This document shows positions 5,320 through 64,000 of a stretch of DNA of 64,000 bases, in pieces; positions within the stretch are counted from its first letter, which is position 1; each line of letters begins with the position of its first letter. Origin of the DNA: Macrostomum lignano (Eukaryota); assembly GCA_002269645.1 (NCBI GenBank), contig NIVC01001971.1:124001-188000 (forward strand). Reading direction: 5' to 3'. Under the pieces are notes generated by a model. That model had not been told where the DNA came from, did no database searches, and saw nothing but the letters and a program-made list of their open reading frames with translations. A program made the translations under genes and the position numbers.

Positions 5320-21160
<15,841 letters not shown>

Positions 21161-27664: not shown

Positions 27665-28998
27665 CTAAAGCAAAAACTTGCCAACCACAAGGCCCAGCAC
27701 CATGGCCAGGACTAGGAACAGAGCCGGTGGCACCAGCGGGCCTCTGGCCGTGGCCACGGCAGTTGAACCTGACGCCGACGAGACATTGGCAGGTCCCGAC
27801 GGAGAGCTGGGCGGCGACGGTCGCATGGCCAGCTTGCGCAGACGGAGATCCTGCAAGAAAGATGGTTGTTAATTTTAACTGGCCAGTTATGCACACCTCG
27901 TAATGCTTATGACTAATTAGGGGTAAGCGTCATAGAAAGTACGCGATGCACTTTTGGAGATTTGTAGCCTAGTGGTAGCCGAGGGGCCCAGCCAAGGTAA
28001 GTCGCAAAAATGCCTATCCGAAAAAATACAGACGTAGTACTAATTAGATGACGAGGCATTTAGTCTTAATAGGACAGTTATTGATACTCCTGCTGTTTAC
28101 CAAAATTTGCGTTAATTTTGCTTTAAAGTTTTTCACAGGTAAGTCGAATTTTTGGTAAAAAATTAAGTCGCACGGCCAGTGTAAATCTGGGAGGCTGTGC
28201 ATGTATGGGTAGGAGCTTTGAACTCATTATTGAAAGCATCTCGCATTTATAACAACTCTGGTTAGTCTACTTGAGTAGGTAGAAAGTTAAACGATAACAA
28301 AACGACTCTTGGACGACTTTATCATGTACGTTCAAACGTACTTTAGAAGTACGCGAGGTACTTTTTAAAGTACGGAAAGTTTTTCAATTACACAAAGCAC
28401 TTTTCAAGACTTTGTACTTTTACAAACAAAAACAGGGTCTCACTTGTTCCGCTAGCCGAGAGTTTTCATCGCGCAGTCGCTGCAACTCCTGCTGCATTTC
28501 GTGCGCGTTTTTCGGCAAATCCGAAGGCGCCGAATTGGCCGCCGCTGCCCCCGGTTGATTGGGCGACGGCGCAGAAGCGTTGGCGACTCCGTCGGCTTCA
28601 ATTTGTACAACGCGCAGCTTGGAGTCCATCAGCTTGTCGGACGAAGCCGAACGCCAGGCCTCGTCAAGAGCGGCGCCAGCCAGATTAGGAGGCGTACTGG
28701 CTGGCATTAGCAGGCTCTGCACCATGAATTTGTGCCGGGAGCGCTGCTCGGCTGTGTCGGACTGATCGCCAGCGCTTGGCTGCAGCATGACGGCGACTTC
28801 GACCTCGCCGCCGGCCTGAATCAGGCCGCTATTTGGCCGGACGCAGTACCGTTTCGGAGCGGTTGTCTTCACTTTAAAGGCCACGGGCTGGTCGGCAATG
28901 GGATTGCTAAGCCGCAGAGTGGTGGTGACCACCCGGTCGAATGGGCCGCGGAACACCAACTCGGAATCTGGCTTCAGGCTTAGGATCTGGCTAGGCAT
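27665..28998 (-). CDS. VAP: VAMP-associated protein (VAP-A/B, Scs2 family), 246 aa; exons 28998-28444 and 27850-27665
   Basis: MSP domain with the VAP consensus FKVKTTAPKRYCVRPNSG and RHKFMVQS; coiled coil ELQRLRDENSRLAEQ; C-terminal TM anchor ALFLVLAMVLGLVVGKFLL. Phase-0 GT-AG intron 28443-27851. Confidence 0.95.
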
Positions 28999-31131: not shown

Positions 31132-34100
31132 TTACGTGTCAGCCAAATGGAAGTCGCTGGGGTCCATCTCGCCATTTTTGCTAGCCCAATGGCCGCGATT
31201 ACAAGAGGCCAGCTCGTCGAACACGACCCGCTTACACTGGGCATAGTCGGCGCATTTCAATGCTCGCAAGCTGACACTGTTCAAGTCTAAATATTCACCA
31301 TCGGCTAATAATCTGCTTTGGATTCGAGCATTAATACGTTTGGCTACCGTCACCGAGGCTGATTGGTTGGCAATCTCTTCAGCCAGTTTGACTATTCGCG
31401 ACAAAGCGGCTCGCTTCGACAGTCTGGAGACTCCGCCACCGTCTAGACTGTCGGTGTCGGGCAGCTGGCGCTCAGCCGGGGTGACATTCTGCGATCGGCG
31501 AATATTTTTCTTACCCTGCGGCCCGTCAATCACTTCGGCTGTGCCGGCACTGCCGTCTACTGGCCGATACCAATTGATTGACAGCACGGCGGTGTCGGGA
31601 TCGGTCGAGCCAAGGCGCAGAGGGTCGCTGGTGCGGCCCAGCCAGGGATCGGCCACGAGCTGGTAGGCTGGGGAGGCCAAGCGATGCCGGAGACGGGGCA
31701 GGCGGCAGAGGAAGCCGCGGGCCATGTTGGCGTGACTGTAGCGACCGGCCACGTCTACGGACTGGGGTCGGGGCGGGTGACAGACGTTTGTGAATGGACT
31801 GTAAAATTGGTGAATCTATTTGTGACCACTTGTGAACAGAATGGATATTTAGATGGTGAACAGAAGGGCTATTTGGTGAACAGAATGACTAGTTGGTGAA
31901 CAGAATGGCTGCTTGGTGAACAGAATGGCTGCTTGGTGAACAGAATGGCTGCTTGGTGAACAGAATGGCTGCTTGGTGAACAGAATGGCTGCTTGGTGAA
32001 CGGAATGGCTGCTTGGTGAACAGAATGGCTAGTTGGTGAACACAATAGCTACTTGGTGAACATAATAATAGCTAGTTGGTGAACCAATTGGTGAGTTTGC
32101 GAGTTGAAAACCTATGCAACCAACAAGGCAAAAGCAAACAAACTGACCTGCAGAAACACTGGCTCAATGAAATTCGCAAGCAGGCCGCCCTGCAGGCCAA
32201 CATAGTTGCATAGCAGCAGCTTGTCGGAGCCGCAGTGCACAGCCAGACTGTTAGGATCTTCAGCCTCCTCTAAGCCGAATGTGCGCACCATTGAGCAATC
32301 GTATTTTTCGTAGCAGGCCAGCGAACCGTAACGAGACAGGTCCGGCTCCAGGACGCCGCATCTAAGGAGCGAATTATGAGGAGTGTGGTACTGTACTGAA
32401 TAGGGATTTGTAAACAGCGGGATACTGAAATGGGGATTTTTACAGAGTGGGAACTGAAATAAGAATGGAAAACAATTTTTGATTTCAAAGATTTGGAGTA
32501 AAATTGAGCATAGAAAGACGCCCTACTCACTTATCGCGAAGTAGTTCCTCTTGCGAGTGCCGTCCGAGCGGGTCGCCGCCAATCGCTCCGGCGGAGTCGC
32601 CGCCGCTGTCACCTGCGGAACAGTCGCCATCAGGCGGCGAGCTGAGCAGCAGGTGCAAAGCCAGGCCGGGTTTCAAGCGCAGCCGGTCGTCGCGATTATT
32701 TGGCTCCAACCAGCGGCCCTGGCCGGAGAAGTAGGCCGACACCTCCTGGGCTAAGCGAATGCGAAAGGCCCGCTTGGCGCACACAAAAGCGGTGCTGTCA
32801 ATCACGAGCTCGCCGTAGGAGTTGTATATGTGCTCCAGCCAGTGATCGTTGACGCTGGAGCCCGTGCCCAGGGCGACCAGCTGCACTGCTGAGGATTTTT
32901 CAGGGTTTCAGTTCTACTGCACTTTGCTTTTATCTGGGATGTTTAGTCTGCGGATTTGGGATAGCGTGGCCCAGCAACTGAGGATCTGGGAGGCTGGCCC
33001 AGAAACTGAGGATCTGGGAGGTTGGCCCAGCAACTGAGGATCTGGGAGGCTGGCCCAGCAACTGAGGATCTGGGAGGCTGGCCCAGCAAATGAGGATCTG
33101 GGAGGCTGGCCCAGCAACTGAGGATCTGGGAGGCTGGCCCAGAAACTGTGGATCTGGGAGGCTGGCCCAGCAAATGAGGATCTAGGCTGGCCCAGCAACT
33201 GGGGATCTGGGAGGGTGGCCCAGTAACTGGGGATCTGGAAGGCTGGCCCAGCAACTAAGGATCTGGGAGGCTGGCCCAGCAACTAAGGATCTGGGAGGCT
33301 GGCCCAGCAACTGAGGATCTGGGAGGCTGGCCAAGCAACTGAGGATCTGGGAGGCTGGCCCAGCAACTGAGGATCTGGGAGGCTGGCCCAGCAACTAAGG
33401 ATCTGGGAGGGTGGCCCAGCAACTAAGGATCTGGGAGGCTGGCCAAGCAACTGAGGATCTGGGAGGCTAACCCAGCAACTGTGGATCTGGGAGGCTGGCC
33501 CAGCAACTGAGGATCTGGGAGGCTGGCCCAGCAACTGAGGATCTTGGAGGCTGGCCAAGCAACTGAGGATCTGGGAGGCTAACCCAGCAACTGTGGATCT
33601 GGGAGGCTGGCCCACAGTGGTGTGATTGGAAAGTTTTCCAAATTTCGCGCCGACTGAAAATTTTCGCGCCATGCCAATAATATTCTACTGACAGCCAAAT
33701 AAGTCAATTGATGACACTTTTGAAGATGCGTCTGGCTACCAATTAGCATGTCTCTTAAGTCACAGCCGTGTCCCCCCTGAACTTCTTGTTGGCGATGTCT
33801 GCAGACAGACGACTGCTCGTGCTGGTGATTGACGACGTTGACAGCAGCTCAGCAGCCTTGCGCTTTAAGACGAGCTCAGCTAGCTTCCCTGCCTTCTTCT
33901 GTTTCTTCTTCTGCACATTCTGCTGCTAACGCCTGAGATTGAACTCAGTTTGTTAGATTAATCTCCTAAGCTATGACATTCTTGTATTTCATACTGTCTG
34001 ACAAGAGAGTAAGTGTAAAAAGCAGAAAATAAGAATGCAATTTTCGCGCCCATGGTTCCACAAAATTTCGCGCCAGACCCCCAGGATTCGCGCATTCGCG

Positions 34101-37100
34101 CCATTTTCGCGCCTGGCGCGAATTCGCGCCTGAATCACACCACTGCTGGCCCAGCAACTGAGGATCTGGGAGGCTGGCCAAGCAACTGAGGATCTGGGAG
34201 GCTAACCCAGCAACTGGGGATCTGAGAGGCAGGCCCAGCAACTGGGGATCTGGGAGGCTGGCCCAGCAACTGAGGATCTGGGAGGCTGGCCCAGCAACTG
34301 AGGATCTGGGAGGCTGGCCCAGCAACTAAGGATCTGGGAGGCTGGCCCAGAAACTGTGGATCTGGGAGGGTGGCCCAGCAACTAAGGATCTGGGAGGGTG
34401 GCCCAGCAACTAAGGATCTGGGAGGCTGGCCAAGCAACTGAGGATCTGGGAGGCTGGCCCAGCAACTGTGGATCTGGGAGGCTGGCCCAGCAACTGAGGA
34501 TCTGGGAGGCTGGCCCAGCAACTGAGGATCTGGGAGGCTGGCCCAGAAACTGTGGATCTGGGAGGCTGGCCCAGCAACTGAGGATCTGGGAGGCTGGCCC
34601 AGCAACTAAGGATCTGGGAGGCTGGCCCAGAAACTGTGGATCTGGGAGGGTGGCCCAGCAACTAAGGATCTGGGAGGGTGGCCCAGCAACTAAGGATCTG
34701 GGAGGCTGGCCAAGCAACTGAGGATCTGGGAGGCTAACCCAGCAACTGTGGATCTGGGAGGCTGGCCCAGCAACTGAGGATCTGGGAGGCTGGCCCAGCA
34801 ACTGAGGATCTTGGAGGCTGGCCAAGCAACTGAGGATCTGGGAGGCTAACCCAGCAACTGTGGATCTGGGAGGCTGGCCCAGCAACTGAGGATCTGGGAG
34901 GCTGGCCAAGCAACTGAGGATCTGGGAGGCTAACCCAGCAACTGGGGATCTGAGAGGCAGGCCCAGCAACTGGGGATCTGGGAGGCTGGCCCAGCAACTG
35001 AGGATCTGGGAGGCTGGCAGTGGTGGCCTTGCAAGTAGGAATCTGAGAGGGTTCTAAGAAGGCATCTGGTAAACAGACTCTATAAGCATGGCAATACCCA
35101 CGGTAAAAGTGGAACCTTAAACTAAAAAGCGACTCACTAGGCTCCGACTGTGGCAATCGCGAATCGGACAAGAATATCGCGGCCACTTTGTCGACGCCGC
35201 CAATTTTGACATCACGAAGCAGAGCGTCCAGCTGCTTCTTGCACTGATCGGCGTAGCGATCGCCAGGGAGAGCGCCAGAGGCGGCCTGCGCGGTCATTGA
35301 GACCAAGGACGCGGCCGGAGAGGCCGAGCGATCCGCGTAGCCGCCGCCGCCGCCGCCGCCGCCGCTGCCACGGGCGATGACATTCAAAGCTAGCCTGGCT
35401 GCCTCCTCCTTGGCCTTCTGCTTGGACTTGGCCTCGCCCGCTTCGTACTCGCTTGGCACTCCGTCAATTGTTAAAATAGCTAAATAGGCAAAATTTCCGC
35501 CCACCTGAACAGTTGTAGGGTTTGGGTAGGCCAGTGTGAAGGAACGCGGAGAGCTGCGAGATATGCGGGAATTCGGGGAAAGGAATGCGGGACTTTGGGG
35601 GAAAGGAATGCGGGACTTTGGGGGAAAGGAATGCGGGACTTCAGGGAAAAGGAATGCGGGACTTTGGGGGAAAGGAATGCGGGACTTTGGGGGAAAGGAA
35701 TGCGGGACTTTGGGGGAAAGGAATGCGGGACTTTGGGGGAAAGGAATGCGGGACTTTGGGGAAAGGAATGCGGGACTTTGGGGGAAAGGAATGCGGGACT
35801 TTGGGGGAAAGGAATGCGGGACTTTGGGGGAAAGGAATGCGGGACTTTGGGGGAAAGGAATGCGGGACTTTGGGGGAAAGGAATGCGGGACTTTGGGGGA
35901 AAGGAATGCGGGACTTTGGGGGAAAGGAATGCGGGACTTTGGGGGAAAGGAATGCGGGACTTTGGGGGAAAGGAATGCGGGACTTTGGGGGAAAGGAATG
36001 TGGGACTTCGGGAAAAGGAATGTGGGACTTCGGGGGAAAGGAATGTGGGACTTCGGGAAAAGGAATGCGGGACTTCAGGCTCAGGGAAAGGAATGTGGAA
36101 ATCGGAGGAAAGGGATGGGAGACTACAGGGAAAAGGGAATACGGGACTTCAGGCTCGGGAAAAGGAGATCCGGGACTTTGGGGAAAGAGGGATGTGGAAC
36201 TTCGGGGAAAAGGAATGCGGGACTTCAGGGAAAAGGAATGCGGGACTTCAGGGAAAAGGAATGCGGGACTTCAGGGAAAAGGAATGCGGGACTTCAGGGA
36301 AAAGGAATGTAGGACTTCAAGATTGGGGAAAAGGAGATCCTAAACTTTGGGGAAAGGGGGATGCGGAACTTCGGGGAAATGGGGGGGGGCGGCGTAACTT
36401 CGGGAAAAGGGGATTGCGGGACTTCGGGAAAAGGGGATTGCGGGACTTCGGGGAAAACGGGGATGTGGGACTTCAGGGAAAACGAGGATGTGGAACTTCA
36501 GGGAAATGGGAAACGGGCCCAGAATTGGGAATGGGAAGCGCAGCAGAAATACATTAATTAAACAAAGAATTAAAACAGCATACCCTAGGCGCCGTAGGCC
36601 TATACTCAATGCTGCCTCGCATGGCAACCGTATACTCATTAAGAATCTGATGCGGCAATTTCTGCGATCTGCCATTAATAAAGGTGCGCAGCATCTCCTG
36701 AGCAGAATCCGATTTGGCCACATTGGCGTACCGAGGCATGCCGTGGGCCCGGTCGGTGGCATCCAGGCTCGGCATTAGGCGCACATTTCCTGACCGCTCC
36801 GATTGGGTGCGGCGATCGATGTACGGCTCCTGACTAGCGGCAGCAGGGCCAGGAGCAGCGGCAAACCCAGATGGAGCCGGCGCGACCTGACTATACTGCA
36901 CCGGTTGCGGCTGCCTCTGCTGACTAGCCAGTCTGTCTCCAGCCTCGCCGCCAAGCGCAGGAAAATCGCCATCGTCAGCTTGAAACTCTTGAGCCGGTTG
37001 GTTCGGCGCCAATAAGCCGAGACTCTGCATCCGACTGCTCAGCGTCACGTGCGAATTCATTGGCAAGTTGAACACTTTTTTAATATGATTTTTTGATCCC

Positions 37101-37201
37101 AAATGCGCCTCGTACTGCGGCCAGGCCGGTATCTGGCCGGATCGGCATACCTGGCACATGTAGGGCGGACCCTCGGATTGCAGCATGTCCTGGGTAGGCA
37201 T
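31132..37201 (-). CDS. ADAR/ADAD-family dsRNA-binding protein, 728 aa, predicted catalytically inactive; exons 37201-36584, 35504-35138, 32888-32531, 32361-32148, 31761-31132
   Basis: Five GT-AG exons join in frame (2187 nt = 729 codons). U1/JAZ-type zinc finger CQVC..QYEAHLGSKNH. dsRBD split by intron 1 (KLPHQILNEY...AKSKQKAKEEAARLAL). Adenosine-deaminase (A_deamin) motifs LVALGTG, LHLLLSSPPDGD, SDKL..NYVGLQGGLLANFIEPVFL, SINW, EVIDGPQGK, SRLSKRA, DYAQCK..F, GHWASK. Confidence 0.9.
31855..32090. repeat. Intronic minisatellite, 20 bp unit ttggtgaacagaatggctgc (ADAR-like intron 4)
   Basis: Tandem copies visible. Confidence 0.9.
32955..35015. repeat. Intronic minisatellite, 28 bp unit ggaggctggcccagcaactgaggatctg (ADAR-like intron 2), interrupted by a MITE
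   Basis: Tandem copies on both sides of 33615-34145. Confidence 0.95.
33615..34145. mobile_element. Non-autonomous hAT-type DNA transposon (MITE), 531 bp
   Basis: Perfect 13 bp TIRs cagtggtgtgatt / aatcacaccactg; 8 bp TSD ctggccca at 33607-33614 and 34146-34153; subterminal ttcgcgcc repeats at both ends. CAG termini with an 8 bp TSD are typical of hAT. Confidence 0.9.
35560..36500. repeat. Intronic minisatellite, 23 bp unit gggggaaaggaatgcgggacttt (ADAR-like intron 1)
   Basis: Homogeneous left half, degenerate right half. Confidence 0.95.
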
Positions 37202-44402: not shown

Positions 44403-45842
44403 ATGGAATTTGTAACTAACTTTCGTACTCTTTCGTACGTCAATTACATCGGCGTTGACGATTTCTCCGATCGTCTGAGCTACCAGATTAGCAGCAGCAT
44501 CCTGACCGTGCTGGGCATACTGGTGACAGCGCGTACCTACGCTATGATGCCGATCGCCTGCTACATACCGCAGGGATTCGGCTTTGAGAAAGGCGGCCAG
44601 CTGGACTTTGTGGATCAATACTGTCTGACAGAGGGCACTTACGCTGTTGATGTCAGGCATTTCCATCTTCATAGCGAACGAAACGATGGCGGGCTGAGCG
44701 CCTATGCGGAGCATAAAATCTACTACTACCAGTGGGTGCCTCTTGTGCTCGGCTTCCAGGCTGTGCTGTGCTGCCTGCCCCGCCTGGTCTGGCGCATGGT
44801 CAGCTTCGACCGGGCCGGCACTGACGTCGGGCGAATCGTCAAGCTGGCCAAGGACGCCTCGGAGGACTCTAGCGGCGGCCTGACGCGCAGGCGGATGGTC
44901 ACGCATATTGCCAGGTTAATCGAGAGGATGATCAAACGACGCCTGCCACCGAAGAAAGAGGAAAGTGGACAGTTAGACGCCCGGGCGCGCCTAATTGTGG
45001 CCTGGCGCACGTTCAGTCGCATGAAGCCATCGCAGCTTAGTGGAAACTACCTGATTATTACCTATCTGCTAATCAAGTTTGCCTACCTGTTGAACGCCGT
45101 AGGCCAGTTGCTTACAATGAAAGAGTTTCTACAATTGAACTCCACGCGCTACACGATGCCTGGAATTGATCTACTCAGAGAGGTGCTGGCCGACATCGAC
45201 TGGCAGAACACCATGGTGTTCCCTCGAGTGGGCGCCTGCGCCGTGAAGATGCGCTCCGCCGTTGGAGTGAACTGGCTGTACGCCCAGTGCGCCCTGCCGG
45301 TCAACATGATCAACGAGAAGATTTACGTATTTCTGTGGTTCTGGTTCTTCGTGGTCGCCGTGGTAACAATAGTGAGCGCATTCGGTTGGCTCTACCGTCT
45401 GGCCTGGCGCTTCAGCCTGATCAACTTTGTCAAGGACTACCTGCGTCTAGCGGACAACTATAGCGAACTAAAATCTAAAAAGCATTTGATGCACAAGTTT
45501 GTTAAGCGGTATTTGAGTCGCGACGGTGCCTTCTTAATGAAAATGATTGCGCTCAACTGCGGTGATATGGTCTGCGCAGACGTGGTCAACGCTATGTGGG
45601 AGAGCTTTCTGTTGCGCGAGAAACTTGGCGACGCCTCGAATTCAACGGAGTTGCCCGGACTGCTGGCTCTGAACTGCCGCGGGCTGCCCGCTTCCAACTG
45701 CGTGAATAGGCGCAGAAAAATGCTGAGATGGCAGAAGAGCGCACCGGAGTCAAATCAACCACCAGCGGACTTGGACGAGCTGGCTGAGCACGCCGCGGAG
45801 CTGGAGCAGTGCCGGAAGGAGGGCCGCGAGATCGACCCCTGA
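44403..45842 (+). CDS. inx: Innexin (gap-junction protein), 479 aa, single coding exon
   Basis: DDFSDRLSY..SSILT; extracellular Cys pairs (PIACY..DQYCL; FPRVGAC..AQCALPVNMINEKIYVFLWFWF); YYYQWVPLVLGFQA signature; four TM segments. Confidence 0.95.
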   Translation: MEFVTNFRTLSYVNYIGVDDFSDRLSYQISSSILTVLGILVTARTYAMMPIACYIPQGFGFEKGGQLDFVDQYCLTEGTYAVDVRHFHLHSERNDGGLSAYAEHKIYYYQWVPLVLGFQAVLCCLPRLVWRMVSFDRAGTDVGRIVKLAKDASEDSSGGLTRRRMVTHIARLIERMIKRRLPPKKEESGQLDARARLIVAWRTFSRMKPSQLSGNYLIITYLLIKFAYLLNAVGQLLTMKEFLQLNSTRYTMPGIDLLREVLADIDWQNTMVFPRVGACAVKMRSAVGVNWLYAQCALPVNMINEKIYVFLWFWFFVVAVVTIVSAFGWLYRLAWRFSLINFVKDYLRLADNYSELKSKKHLMHKFVKRYLSRDGAFLMKMIALNCGDMVCADVVNAMWESFLLREKLGDASNSTELPGLLALNCRGLPASNCVNRRRKMLRWQKSAPESNQPPADLDELAEHAAELEQCRKEGREIDP

Positions 45843-47685: not shown

Positions 47686-49095
47686 ATGGAGGACGTGCGG
47701 AACGACCAGGGCGGCAATTTCAGCTGCACCAGCTGCAGCAAGGCGCTCACCGGGCAGCGCTACATCCTGCGCGAGGAGAAGCCGCACTGCATTCAGTGCT
47801 ACGAGCAGGTGTTCGCTAACAGCTGCGAACAATGCAAGGAGAAGATTGGCTGCGATTCCAAGGTAAGCTGGATGGTAACATGTAATATTGACTTATCAAA
47901 AAACAGTAAACGCAAATTGCATGTACCCGTATGAGTAGTTGGAGCGACGTTTTTTTAGTAAAGGTTCTTCTTTAGAAGCTTTTCAAAAGGACCGTACTAC
48001 TTTAGTATAACAGTACGTGAAACTCAGAGATCGTGTAATGTTTTACACCTTCTTTACACCTTTGACACTGGAATGGAGATTAGTAGGCTATTGTGTCCGT
48101 TAAGTTTCGGCTTAGTTCCCATTGCTAAGTATATAATGGTACAAGCGGATTCCCGTCCTCTCCAGGACCTGTCGTACAAGGACCGGCACTGGCACGAGCG
48201 CTGCTTCAAGTGCTCCTCCTGCCAGGGCAGCCTGGTTGACAAGCCCTTCGCCACTAAAGACGACGCGTTGTTCTGTTCAAATTGTCACGACGAAAAATAC
48301 GCCGCCCGTTGCGACGGCTGCGGCAAGCCGTTCAACGCCGGGATTCGCAAGTACGAATACCACGGCAAGCAGTGGCATGAGGACTGCTTCCTGTGCAAGG
48401 AGTGCCGAGAGCCAATTGGCAGCCGTTCGTTCATCCCGCGCGACCAAGAGGTCTGCTGCGTGCCCTGCTACGAGCAGAAGTACGCGCAGAAGTGCCGCAA
48501 ATGCGAGCAGGCTATTAAACGCGGCGGAGTCACGTACAAAGGCGAGCCCTACCACAAGGAGTGCCTGGTGTGCGGCAACTGCAACGGGCAGCTGGCTGGA
48601 GTGAAGTTCACCAGCAAGGAGAACAAGCCCTACTGTGCCGAATGCTACGGCCAACTATTTGCTAAGAAGTGCTGTCGCTGCACCCAGCCAATCACGGGTC
48701 AGTCAGTGCGCTAACCTGGGGTTACGACCAGTAGTATTATTAGGACATTGAAGCTTGAGAAAGGAAATGACGAGACCAATCTTGCCTTTAACTTTTGTTT
48801 TCCATAGTAAATTGCATCGAATAAGGTTTTATTATAATACGAAAAGTAAAGGGCAGAGAAGCTCAGCGGAAAAATTTATTCTTTTAAGTTTGGGGCAGAA
48901 TTTCTTTTGATAATAAATAGAAAAATTCTCTGAACACATTCAAACCTAGGCTTCGGTGGCTGCAAGTTCATCTCGTTCGAGGACAGGCACTGGCACTCGG
49001 ACTGCTTTGTGTGCTACAAGTGCTCAGTGAACCTGGTCGGCCGCGGCTTCTTAACAGACGGCGATGAAATTCTGTGTCCGGAGTGCGGCCGCTGA
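47686..49095 (+). CDS. FHL: Four-and-a-half LIM domain protein (FHL2/limpet-like), 284 aa; exons 47686-47862, 48166-48697, 48950-49095 (possible extra 5' exon 47139-47431)
   Basis: Half LIM (FSCTSCSKALTGQRYILREEKPHCIQCYEQVFANSC) followed by DLSYKDRHWHERCF and further LIM domains ending HWHSDCFVCYKC..LCPECGR*. GT-AG introns in phases 0 and 1; 855 nt total. Confidence 0.93.
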
Positions 49096-50335: not shown

Positions 50336-52746
50336 CTAAAAGTCGTCCTGGGCTTTCGCATTTTTATAATAGGTCGTTAGTTCCATATTAAGCGCAGAGC
50401 CCTCTTCTCGCATGATGGCGTCAAGATCCCTGTCCAGCCTGGCCTTCTCCTCCGCCGGCTTCTCCTCGATGATGTAATCGGGCATTGCGCTGGCGGCTCT
50501 CGCTGCACCGGCCGGCCGGTTGAAGCCTCTTCCGCCGCGGCCTCGGCGAGATGGGCCGCCTTGCCGAACGCCGCGGCTGACGCCGTAACGGCGCTGGGGT
50601 GAGTAGCCGCCGACGTTGCCAGGATAACCCGCTGGTTGGTTTCTATACTGTCGGTTAAGTCGATTACTGTTGACAAACTCAACTGTGTTTCTGTAAATCC
50701 AATTATTAATTTGAGGCATAAGTAAACTGAATCTAGCTAGTACAAGTACTAGCATCCCATGGCTCTGAGATCCTCACTCACCGATCCCATCGCTCTCAGA
50801 TCCTCACTCACCGATCCCATCTCTCTCAGATCCTCACTCACCGATCCCATTGCTCTGAGATCCTCACTCACCGATCCCATCGCTCTCAGATCCTCACTCA
50901 CCGATCCCATCGCTCTCAGATCCTCACTCACCGATCCCATCGCTCTCAGATCCTCACTCACCGATCCCATTGCTCTGAGATCCTCACTCACCGATCCCAT
51001 CGCTCTCAGATCCTCACTCACCGATCCCATCGCTCTCAGATCCTCACTCACCGATCCCATCGCTCTCAGATCCTCACTCACCGATCCCATCGCTCTCAGA
51101 TCCTCACTCACCGATTCCATGGCTCTGAGATCCTAGCTCACTGATAGATCCCATAACTCTTAGATCCTCACTTCAAGATACCGCAGCTCTGAGATCCCAT
51201 ATTCCTAGACTCGGCCTGAGATCCCATATTCCCTGACTCGGCCTGAGATCCCATATTCCCACAGTCGGCCTGAGATCCCATATTCCCAGACTCGGCCTGA
51301 GATCCCATATTCCCTGACTCGGCCTGAGATCCCATATTCCCAGACTCGGCTTGAGATCCCATATTCCCACAGTCGGCCTGAGATCCCATATTTCCAGACT
51401 CGGCCTGAGATCCCATATTCCCACAGTCGGCCTGAGATCCCATATTCCCAGACTCGACCTGAGATCCCATATTCCAAGACTCGGCCTGAGATCCCATTTC
51501 CCAGACTCGGCCTGAGATCCCATATTCCCTGACTCGGCCTGAGATCCCATATTCCCACAGTCGGCCTGAGATCCCATATTCCCAGACTCGGCCTGAGATC
51601 CCATATTCCCTGACTCGGCCTGAGATCCCATATTCCCAGACTCGGCTTGAGATCCCATATTCCCACAGTCGGCCTGAGATCCCATATTTCCAGACTCGGC
51701 CTGAGATCCCATATTCCCACAGTCGGCCTGAGATCCCATATTCCCAGACTCGACCTGAGATCCCATATTCCAAGACTCGGCCTGAGATCCCATTTCCCAG
51801 ACTCGGCCTGAGATCCCATATTCCCTGACTCGGCCTGAGATCCCATATTCCCACAGTCGGCCTGAGATCCCATATTCCCAGACTCGGCCTGAGATCCCAT
51901 ATTCCCTGACTCGGCCTGAGATCCCATATTCCCAGACTCGGCTTGAGATCCCATATTCCCACAGTCGGCCTGAGATCCCATATTTCCAGACTCGGCCTGA
52001 GATCCCATATTCCCACAGTCGGCCTGAGATCCCATATTCCCAGACTCGACCTGAGATCCCATATTCCCTGACTCGGCCTGAGATCCCATATTCCCACAGT
52101 CGGCCTGAGATCCCATATTCCCAGACTCGGCCTGAGATCCCATATTCCCTGACTCGGCCTGAGATCCCATATTCCCTGACTCGGCCTGAGATCCCATATT
52201 CCCAGACTCGACCTGAGATCCCATATTCCAAGACTCGGCCTGAGATCCCATATTCCCACAGTCGGCCTGAGATCCCATATTCCCAGACTCGACCTGAGAT
52301 CCCATATTCCAAGACTCGGCCTGAGATCCCATTTCCCAGACTCGGCCTGAGATCCCATATTCCCAGACTCGGCCTGAGATCCCATATTCCCTGACTCGGC
52401 CTGAGATCCCATATTCCCAGACTCGACCTGAGATCCCATATTCCAAGACTCGGCCTGAGATCCCATTTCCCAGACTCGGCCTGAGATCCCATATTCCCTC
52501 AGTCGCTCACCTGCCAACTCGGAATGCATGGCTTCGCCGGTTCGGGCCTCCCCTGCCAACAGCGCCGGCAGGGCTGCTAGCGGGAAACTGTGCTGCCCGC
52601 GCCGAAGGCACGACCACTACCTCTCGCTCTCGAAACGGCCGTTCAATTCGACCCTGAAGGACCCCCCGCAGTCGGTCATTCATCGCACCTTCGTACCGAT
52701 TGCCACCGCCACCTCTATTACGGCCGGATGGAGCGCCTCTGCGCAT
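50336..52746 (-). CDS. CHTOP / Friend-of-PRMT1-like RGG-rich protein; exons ~52800/52746-52511 and ~50690-50336 (5' end uncertain)
   Basis: Arg/Gly-rich segments in both exons. C-terminal EEKARLDRDLDAIMREEGSALNMELTTYYK has the spacing of the duplicated LDxxLDxYM FoP motif. Phase-2 donor at 52510; phase-compatible acceptors give exon starts at 50690, 50666 or 50642. Confidence 0.65.
50755..51135. repeat. Intronic minisatellite, 30 bp unit cgctctcagatcctcactcaccgatcccat
   Basis: About 12 copies; 10-aa periodicity in the ORF track. Confidence 0.95.
51185..52495. repeat. Intronic minisatellite, 27 bp unit cctgagatcccatattcccagactcgg with multi-unit higher-order blocks
   Basis: About 48 copies ending ~15 nt from the splice donor. 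Confidence 0.95.
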
Positions 52747-59497: not shown

Positions 59498-60142
59498 TCA
59501 GCCTCGCCAATCGTCCCCATCGATGTCGTCCTCATCGTCGCTGCTGACTTCGGCGTCGATGAACTCCAGCACGGCTGCCGGGTCGAATGGCTTCAACGAG
59601 GAGGCGACTCCGTCCGGTCGTTCTTCGCCGCCGACGCTGTAGTCGGTGAGCATAGCAACGGTTGCTAGGGGCTCATCGCCAGGCGCCGGCTGACGAACGG
59701 CGAGTCTCCGGTGACGCAGGCGGGCGCAGCAGAGGTAGCCGAGCACCAGCAGCAGCAGCAGCAGCAGGGCTACAAAAAGGAACACCGATACGAATGCCGC
59801 AGTGCTGAGGTCGAGAGTCGACGGCAGCAGCGGGATGTCGCAGTTGTAGCCGGTGTAGCCGCTCGGGCACTCGCAGCTCGGCTGGTCCAGCCGCTCCTCA
59901 ATCCGGCTGTGCGCCACCGACCATTTCACCGCCACGGTGCAGCGGCCGCCGTTGGCGCAGTAGATCTGCTCGTGCGGCTCGCATGGCACCTTGCGGAATA
60001 CAAACGGGCGAAGGTATTCAGCTGGCGGCAGCTGCACCCGGGCTGGCTGGCGGCCGCAGGCGTCCACCACAAGCGGCGTAGGCGCCAGCAACAGCGGCAA
60101 CAGTGATGGAAGCAGCGACTTGGCCGAATAGTAATGTCGCAT
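59498..60142 (-). CDS. Single-pass membrane protein with one EGF module (EGFR-ligand-like precursor), 214 aa, single exon
   Basis: Hydrophobic N-terminus (signal peptide-like), EGF module C-x7-C-x5-C-x21-C-x-C-x8-C, short stalk, TM segment AAFVSVFLFVALLLLLLLVLGYLCC, basic stop-transfer ARLRHRR and an acidic tail. Confidence 0.8.
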   Translation of the reverse strand: MRHYYSAKSLLPSLLPLLLAPTPLVVDACGRQPARVQLPPAEYLRPFVFRKVPCEPHEQIYCANGGRCTVAVKWSVAHSRIEERLDQPSCECPSGYTGYNCDIPLLPSTLDLSTAAFVSVFLFVALLLLLLLVLGYLCCARLRHRRLAVRQPAPGDEPLATVAMLTDYSVGGEERPDGVASSLKPFDPAAVLEFIDAEVSSDDEDDIDGDDWRG

Positions 60143-61255: not shown

Positions 61256-61705
61256 GAGACACCAGTGAGATTAAGGGAGACTCAGAAGCAACCACAAGAT
61301 TGAGATGGTAGGAGATTCAGCTGGGGAAGTGAGAAGTGCGAGCCTCAACGAGTTCGCAAGCCCACTTGCCCCGAGAGTCCCGTTATCTATACACAAAGAT
61401 TCGCCCACGAAGTCCCCCAAACTCCGTGCATAGCTGGCCTTTTCCTGCGCGTTATACTCGCAGCTATTTTTGGGCAAATATTGTTTGTTCCACAAGTCGC
61501 CAAATTAGTAGAACAATATCAGCCTTACGTCCACCACATGCATGCAGGCTTATCACTCAGAGCGTGAAAATGAGCAGACTTTGGACTAAATCTTTTACGT
61601 GCTCACTGTCTAATACGCCCTCGTATCTGAAACACAGAAATACTAATGCAGCACGATAACTCTATTAATATGACATCACAAAGGCTATTATAGTAGATAA
61701 ATGGG

Positions 61706-64000
<2,295 letters not shown>

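Follow-up and report, generated by a model that had tools for sequence, protein, structure and literature searches.

A probably maintained, catalytically inactive ADAR-family protein with a highly divergent deaminase domain in the flatworm Macrostomum lignano

Introduction

Relatives of the ADAR adenosine deaminases that are catalytically dead recur in animals: vertebrates have ADAD1 and ADAD2 in the testis, nematodes have ADR-1, ADAR3 occurs in the brain, and molluscs possess ADAD-like proteins. Mouse ADAD1 and ADAD2 carry mutations at three of the four zinc-site residues, and the vertebrate proteins are testis-specific and needed for male fertility, with editing unaffected (PMC7360552). ADR-1 of C. 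elegans reportedly carries a mutation at every zinc-coordinating position and works through RNA binding, promoting the access of ADR-2 to its targets (PMC7360552); it is divergent from other ADARs in phylogenetic trees (PMC8797187). The squid protein sqADAR/D-like, which carries the substitutions C451S, C516A and E396A, has no activity on double-stranded RNA (dsRNA) and inhibits ADAR2 in vitro (PMC10278661). ADADs have also been described in lophotrochozoans, as sister to ADAR1 (PMC6651903, PMC9989829), and work on planarians describes just two active ADARs, ADAR1 and ADAR2 (PMC8797187). Here, we describe an ADAR-like gene of Macrostomum lignano that lies within a 64,000-nucleotide stretch of contig NIVC01001971.1 (positions 124,001 to 188,000), hereafter referred to as the window; all coordinates below are those of the window.

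We estimate a probability of roughly 80% that selection maintains this locus as an expressed gene whose product is a catalytically dead ADAR-family protein. It is an unusually divergent addition to the known class of dead ADAR relatives that comprises ADAD1/2, ADR-1 and the mollusc ADADs.

Gene structure

The ADAR-like gene is located on the minus strand (37201-31132) and consists of five exons. All introns are of the GT-AG type, and the coding sequence of 2187 nt specifies a product of 728 residues followed by a stop codon, in agreement with the intact splice sites and 728-residue open reading frame (ORF) noted in a first-pass annotation of this DNA. The interval 32148-32888, in which that annotation had placed a deaminase domain, corresponds to exon 3, intron 3 and exon 4. 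The exons are as follows.

Exon 1, 36584..37201, minus strand: residues 1-206; ATG at 37201, donor AGG/gtatgc; CCHH motif, low-complexity linker and first half of the dsRNA-binding domain (dsRBD)
Exon 2, 35138..35504, minus strand: residues 207-329; second half of the dsRBD (KSKQKAKEEAA), glycine run and start of the deaminase domain
Exon 3, 32531..32888, minus strand: residues 329-448; deaminase core with DSTAF and PPDGD
Exon 4, 32148..32361, minus strand: residues 448-519; LEPD, SRYGS loop, RTFGL and HCGSDK
Exon 5, 31132..31761, minus strand: residues 520-728 and stop codon; C-terminal half of the deaminase fold, with retained inositol hexakisphosphate (IP6) ligands

Exon 1 and its splice site are the same in the paralogs. 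The acceptor of exon 3 is a tandem NAGNAG (cag/CAG/TGC, 32885-32891), with an alternative exon start at 32885. Use of the first AG yields ...SEP-TV-QLV, and use of the second ...SEP-M-QLV. The GenBank models of different gene copies differ in which of the two acceptors they use, which suggests that both isoforms are transcribed.

The locus is identical to gene BOX15_Mlig013792g1 on contig NIVC01001971.1 of assembly GCA_002269645.1 (100% identity over 9 kb), and the protein is 99% identical to UniRef entry A0A1I8H8C9 of M. lignano. Since the GenBank annotation of this species rests on a genome-guided transcriptome assembled from RNA-seq reads (PMC5730564), the gene model is an indirect sign of transcription and splicing. 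A chance or repeat-derived reading frame was considered and ruled out, the five exons being supported by Pfam and conserved in the paralogs. The many intronic ORFs at the locus are translations of minisatellites.

Active site

Deaminases of the cytidine deaminase (CDA) fold use a zinc-activated water molecule and a glutamate that acts as a proton shuttle. Residues of the M. lignano protein were mapped through alignments to human ADAR1 and ADAR2 and through a 33-sequence MAFFT alignment anchored on lemur ADAR3. With reference to human ADAR2, the zinc ligand H394 is replaced by T361, the proton-shuttle residue E396 by F363 and the zinc ligand C451 by D415. The first two replacements lie in DSTAF, read from 32799 to 32785, and the third in PPDGD, the counterpart of SPCGD, just as the first-pass annotation had them. 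The remaining zinc ligand, C516, is paired with G492 by MAFFT, with Cys491 one residue upstream, while HMMER pairs Cys491 of HCGSDK with C516 by means of one inserted residue. The third ligand is therefore not clearly absent and may instead be displaced by one position: the reading of HCGSDK for MSCSDK stands, with glycine at the C516 position in one alignment. A further revision applies to K483. This lysine is not conserved, as had been proposed, but its region had been matched to LACY; both HMMER alignments pair GVLEPDL with GQLRTKI, placing LEPD opposite LRTK and D455 at the K483 position, and LACY pairs with the TIPV strand. The motifs are located as follows.

DSTAF, 32785-32799, minus strand: residues 359-363
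PPDGD, 32623-32637, minus strand: residues 413-417
LEPD, 32340-32351, minus strand: K483 replaced by D455
HCGSDK, 32220-32237, minus strand: residues 490-495

Two further elements are changed. The flipping loop ESGEG, which contains E488, reads SRYGS, and TWDG, which all of the active ADARs examined share, is replaced by TFGL within RTFGL. We take TWDG to be the ADAR2-type dimerisation motif of the deaminase domain; if it is, its loss would argue against heterodimerisation through that helix. Because the protein is without the histidine, the first cysteine, the glutamate, the K483 and E488 residues and TWDG, and its second cysteine is displaced or lost, neither activation of water nor deamination of adenosine would be expected. 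Judged by the mechanism of CDA-fold deaminases, the protein is almost certainly unable to deaminate adenosine.

The domain could in principle still be a deaminase, or another metal-dependent enzyme, with a rebuilt site in which, for example, Cys418, His490 and Cys491 serve as ligands. These three residues adjoin the former ligand positions, making a residual metal site possible: Cys418 is three residues past the C451 position, His490 directly precedes Cys491, and HMMER pairs the latter with C516; purifying selection on the domain (see below) would also fit. However, the E396 position is taken by Phe363, with no glutamate or other acidic proton shuttle there or nearby, and reading of the translated deaminase domain by eye gave neither an H-x-E nor a C-x-E motif. 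The equivalents of the flipping loop and of K483 are replaced as well, and squid sqADAR/D-like, with the fewer substitutions C451S, C516A and E396A, is already inactive in vitro (PMC10278661). We consider a surviving or rebuilt enzyme extremely improbable.

Domains and predicted fold

The assignment to the ADAR family, made in the first-pass annotation, is borne out by the Pfam profile A_deamin (PF02137), which matches residues 334-713 with E=7.1e-26 and 91.9 bits against a cut-off of 27, over profile positions 1-327 of 329. A phmmer search of the PDB aligns the deaminase domain to human ADAR1 (1.5e-13), Hydra ADAR, C. elegans ADR-2 and human ADAR2. A single dsRBD, split by intron 1, precedes it. 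Pfam dsrm gives this domain 23.8 bits on the isolated segment (cut-off 23) and 18.8 bits in the full protein. It retains the lysines of the KxKAK motif, and its GPxH loop is non-canonical. By these profile matches the protein belongs to the ADAR family as broadly defined by an A_deamin fold and a dsRBD.

A structure predicted by AlphaFold2 (AF2) with a 112-sequence alignment has a mean predicted local distance difference test score (pLDDT) of 70.4, with the dsRBD and the deaminase core mostly above 90; this model replaced one based on an 11-sequence alignment (pLDDT 51.6). The dsRBD is predicted to adopt the alpha-beta-beta-beta-alpha arrangement, with pLDDT of 87-97 over residues 170-250, and values are about 90 across most of residues 490-600 and 630-720. 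The top Foldseek matches of the model are ADAR deaminase domains only: Hydra ADAR with a target-based TM-score (TMt) of 0.85, human ADAR1 with 0.83 and ADAR2 with 0.77-0.81, at E-values down to 5e-21. Foldseek matches of the dsRBD, which include ADAR1 dsRBD3 and Loquacious dsRBD1, are weak (best E 4e-3, others 8e-3 to 6e-2).

The IP6 pocket was assessed against the ligands of ADAR2 listed in Table 1 of PMC10278661. In ADAR2 numbering, and according to the MAFFT alignment, R401, K519, K629, Y668, K672, W687, K690 and D695 are retained, R400 is replaced by lysine, and Y658 is retained under one alignment only. The ligands encoded by exon 5 are K635, Y692, K696, W711, K714 and D719 in the protein's own numbering. 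Three ligands are lost (R522L, W523C and K662A).

Gene copies and selection

The assembly carries two further copies of the gene, L002 and L003. The DV1 karyotype of M. lignano has a highly redundant genome (PMC5730564), and two extra copies are thus expected. Identity among the copies is about 99% in exons and about 94-95% in intron-containing stretches. All eight splice sites (8/8) are conserved in the three copies, and the ORF of 728 or 729 residues is intact in two.

The copies differ mainly at synonymous positions. Over the whole coding sequence, L002 and the window copy are separated by 15 synonymous and 7 non-synonymous changes (dN/dS 0.148, binomial p=1.8e-5), and within the deaminase domain by 8 and 2 (dN/dS 0.08, p=4e-4). 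For L003 and the window copy the whole-sequence counts are 14 and 7 (dN/dS 0.159, p=5e-5). Across copy comparisons, dN/dS ranges from 0.15 to 0.21 overall and from 0.08 to 0.11 in the deaminase domain, in both cases significantly below 1. Together with the conserved splice sites, the confident AF2 fold, the ADAR-like Foldseek matches and the retention of most IP6 ligands, these low ratios point to a domain that is maintained and folded but non-catalytic. The earlier suggestion of a non-catalytic protein kept intact thus gains support from selection between copies, from the predicted structure and from transcript-based annotation.

Could the locus instead be a relic, a duplicate of an ADAR gene that has no function of its own and is decaying into a pseudogene? 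The complete catalytic set is lost, divergence from all relatives is extreme, and the redundancy of the DV1 genome relaxes constraint on single copies (PMC5730564). In addition, one of the three copies, L003 (NIVC01001199.1, BOX15_Mlig028402g1), has a premature TAG (CAG to TAG) at codon 505 in exon 4, within the conserved GLQG motif, equivalent to 32190-32192 of the window. The rest of this copy is intact, and its GenBank protein of 526 residues, flagged partial, ends at the codon-505 stop; L003 is either a recently disabled duplicate or the product of an assembly error. A relic is nevertheless hard to reconcile with the low dN/dS in the dead domain itself, with two copies that keep the full ORF and all splice sites, with a high-confidence predicted fold whose IP6 pocket is largely kept, and with transcript-based gene models. 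We regard it as highly improbable, and the gene as very probably functional rather than decaying.

Several points weigh against a maintained gene for a dead ADAR relative. The selection test is based on just ~22 substitutions per pair, and conservation is seen only among recent duplicates, with no ortholog above 31% identity among the proteins scanned. The literature searched, including the supplements of PMC5730564, PMC5173321 and PMC7336406, yielded neither an expression pattern nor RNA-binding data or a phenotype for the gene. The stop in L003, the three lost IP6 ligands and the possible residual metal site belong on the same side, as do the narrow profile margins and saturated distances given in the next section.

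Relationship to ADADs

When 1.84 billion representative proteins were scanned exhaustively with HMMER, with the 99% identical paralog protein P0001 as query, 389 hits were obtained, of which the best outside the M. lignano cluster is a bivalve ADAD-like protein (2e-21, 31% identity). Among the 112 domain-covering hits that were aligned, the subset with degenerate sites consists of mollusc ADAD1 and ADAD1-like proteins, represented here by Aplysia californica XP_005110992.1, Physella acuta XP_059164781.1, Littorina saxatilis XP_070204202.1 and a Haliotis ADAD. The residues at the positions of H394, E396, C451 and C516 are as follows.

ADAR-like protein of M. lignano: T/F/D/G
Aplysia ADAD1: T/L/D/Q
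Physella ADAD1-like: S/L/D/S
Littorina ADAD1-like: T/V/S/T

Not every invertebrate protein of this name is degenerate. The Lingula anatina 'ADAD1' of NCBI (P0012 / P0169) has intact DSHAE, APCGD and MSCSDK motifs, and once these motifs are masked, the ADAR1 profile gives it a higher score than the mollusc ADAD profile does. Accordingly, 'ADAD1' as a database name in invertebrates is not a reliable indication of a dead enzyme.

The M. lignano protein was scored against clade profiles, both with its native sequence and with the three motifs masked. The scores, in bits, are given as native / masked.

Mollusc ADAD profile: 127 / 89.5
Mixed degenerate group profile: 131 / 96.6
Unnamed group Y profile: 113 / 87.0
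ADAT1-like profile: 108 / 76.8
ADAR1 profile: 104 / 80.4
ADAR2 profile: 104 / 72.6

The masked ADAD margin is just +9 bits over ADAR1 and +17 over ADAR2. By way of calibration, other family members reach 145-440 bits on the clade profiles, compared with 73-90 for the masked M. lignano protein, and its deaminase domain is, by these scores, the most divergent family member seen. Nine columns distinguish mollusc ADADs from ADARs of either type. In the M. lignano protein, four of them (I358, E377, E480 and V489) show the ADAD state, none shows the ADAR state and five match neither; a strict search for diagnostic columns gave almost none, and these nine came from relaxed criteria. The ...CR(L/V) motif, CRL here, is shared with ADAR1 and ADAD and is not the ADAR2 version. 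A neighbour-joining (NJ) tree (Kimura distance, 100 bootstraps) places the protein beside ADAT1-like sequences with 24-44% support, at distances that are saturated at ~1.6-1.7. This placement was rejected as uninformative because of the saturation. ADAT1 has an A_deamin domain but no dsRBD, and its HAE/C/C site is intact; ADAT1 identity itself is ruled out by the dsRBD and the dead site, and the ADAT1-like profile is not the best.

The architecture of one dsRBD and a degenerate A_deamin domain fits an ADAD. However, the active ADAR1 and ADAR2 of planarians also carry a single RNA-binding domain (PMC8797187), so this architecture is not diagnostic in flatworms. The affinity to ADADs amounts to a lean, and we would put true orthology at close to, but short of, an even chance.

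Alternatively, an ADAR1-like or other A_deamin paralog may have lost catalysis independently in flatworms, evolved fast and gained a zinc finger, in parallel to ADR-1; such a lineage-specific offshoot could differ in function from ADADs. Its position outside the ADADs in the NJ tree would fit this origin, as would the near-equidistance of the masked sequence from the clade profiles (89.5 for ADAD, 87.0 for Y, 80.4 for ADAR1, 76.8 for ADAT1-like and 72.6 for ADAR2), the non-diagnostic single dsRBD and an N-terminal CCHH motif that is present in none of 154 relatives (0/154). Bivalve ADADs, moreover, still keep C451, C516 or the histidine, which implies that catalytic residues have been lost repeatedly and independently. 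Against an independent origin, the highest pairwise and profile scores are those of ADAD-type sequences, the protein shows ADAD states at I358, E377, E480 and V489 and zero ADAR-specific states, and the replacements by T (H394) and D (C451) are the same as in Aplysia ADAD1. We hold the offshoot to be possible but rather doubtful.

In the planarian Schmidtea mediterranea, transcript dd_Smed_v6_4276_0_1 has 24% identity to residues 234-699 of human ADAR2 and 26% to ADAR1 (S1 Table of PMC8797187); the paper itself deals with ADAR1 and ADAR2 and does not take this transcript up. It is a candidate for the planarian counterpart of this divergent ADAR-like gene.

N-terminal CCHH motif

Near the N-terminus, exon 1 encodes a motif that ends in HLGSKNHIKKV and has the C-x2-C-x12-14-H-x5-H spacing of U1/matrin-type C2H2 fingers.

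C16-x2-C19-x13-H33-x5-H39 (YMCQVCRSGQIPAWPQYEAHLGSKNH), 37085..37156, minus strand: putative U1/matrin-like C2H2 zinc finger

Some U1/matrin-type C2H2 fingers bind dsRNA. The pattern arises by chance in 0.19% of protein shuffles, and none of the 154 ADAR-family relatives has it. Profile matches are non-significant: Pfam zf-met gives E=1 for the H-x5-H half only, and C2H2 fingers of the PDB give E~0.9. The AF2 pLDDT is below 50 at the motif, and one paralog carries G35V within it. The putative zinc finger is a lead rather than a finding.

The protein might be a flatworm-specific invention outside the ADADs, in which the zinc finger, the dsRBD and a fast-evolving, IP6-stabilised pseudo-deaminase shell form a new module for recognition of RNA or protein, maybe with a rebuilt metal site at Cys418, His490 and Cys491. 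We consider this unlikely; if true, it would imply a pathway unlike that of ADADs or ADR-1, for example the handling of dsRNA from the repeat-rich M. lignano genome.

Repeats and neighbouring genes

Introns 1, 2 and 4 of the gene consist largely of minisatellites, and the array in intron 2, which is intronic and outside the protein, is interrupted by a transposon-like element resembling a miniature inverted-repeat transposable element (MITE).

Intron 1 minisatellite, 35563-36317: 23-bp x32
Intron 2 minisatellite, 32967-35018: 28-bp unit, ~73 copies
MITE-like element, 33614-34146: 533 bp, inside the intron 2 minisatellite, with 13-nt terminal inverted repeats CAGTGGTGTGATT / AATCACACCACTG
Intron 4 minisatellite, 31854-32066: 20-bp x11
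(ATAG)n, 61690-64000: 2.3 kb at the end of the window

The insertion of the MITE-like element is recent, as the two other gene copies are without it. Minisatellite copy number varies among the gene copies, with intron 2 measuring 2249, 1427 and 536 bp. In total, 27 tandem arrays are present across the window, a repeat load consistent with the 15% of tandem repeats reported for the M. lignano genome. Other ORFs of the window are listed below.

19760-21160, plus strand: Q/H-rich ORF of 466 residues, no Pfam match
28420-28998, minus strand: MSP-domain (VAP-like) protein, 2.1 kb downstream of the ADAR-like gene and on the same strand
44403-45842, plus strand: innexin (E=1e-80)
48073-48714, plus strand: FHL-like LIM protein
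50336-50755, minus strand: FoP/CHTOP-like C-terminal domain
59498-60142, minus strand: small EGF-like protein

Proposed function and comparison with known dead ADAR relatives

The protein is predicted to have a disordered N-terminus that carries the CCHH zinc-finger-like motif, followed by a single dsRBD and a full deaminase fold of the ADAR type. It would act as an RNA-binding protein whose dsRBD engages double-stranded or structured RNA, possibly aided by the putative zinc finger, while the deaminase-like domain would serve as a non-catalytic scaffold around the IP6 pocket. It may work by occupancy of RNA or by recruitment to it. The process affected could be either editing, modulated as by ADR-1, ADAR3 and squid ADAR/D-like, or a germline role independent of editing, as for mouse ADAD1/2. 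RNA interference and transgenesis are available in M. lignano, and the gene could serve as a tractable system for separating editing-dependent from editing-independent roles of dead ADARs, and the flatworm case offers a domain that is maximally degenerate at its active site yet demonstrably constrained.

The nearest counterparts are pseudo-deaminases of the ADAD, ADR-1 and squid ADAR/D-like type, and in sequence the best match is to the mollusc ADAD1-like proteins. These likewise consist of one dsRBD and an A_deamin domain, and their pairwise and profile scores are the highest. In the gastropod members none of the four catalytic residues is present, and Aplysia has the same T (H394) and D (C451) as the M. 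lignano protein; versions of the 'IDSxA' and 'PPxGD' motifs are common to both, and neither has TWDG. In contrast, identity to the M. lignano protein is just 25-31%, molluscs have 'GDY' and 'MSxSDK' where M. lignano has 'GDC' and 'HCGSDK', and W523 and K662 are retained in molluscs but lost in M. lignano. The mollusc proteins are without the CCHH motif at the N-terminus, where they have in common a YIPGL motif of which M. lignano retains no more than a vestige.

Vertebrate ADAD1 (TENR) and ADAD2 also combine a single dsRBD with an inactive deaminase domain. They differ, as the first-pass annotation had stated, in retaining the histidine that is replaced in the M. lignano protein: human ADAD1 reads DTHAV, LPKGS and MSSSDK, and human ADAD2 reads DCHGL (sequences from S1 Table of PMC8797187). 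Squid sqADAR/D-like and human ADAR3 resemble the M. lignano protein as inactive ADAR-like proteins kept beside active ADARs. Each, however, has two dsRBDs, and ADAR3 has all catalytic residues while sqADAR/D-like has the histidine. ADR-1, which has two dsRBDs, is likened here by its published description only, as a catalytically dead ADAR-family protein.

To the first-pass annotation, this copy looked decayed at the active site beyond the inactive relatives known so far, and perhaps a distinct kind of protein. That view does not hold, since Aplysia, Physella and Littorina are without all four residues and ADR-1 is reportedly alike. As ADR-1 and gastropod ADADs already provide cases in which the full catalytic set is lost, the M. 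lignano protein leaves the current picture of dead ADAR relatives unchanged.

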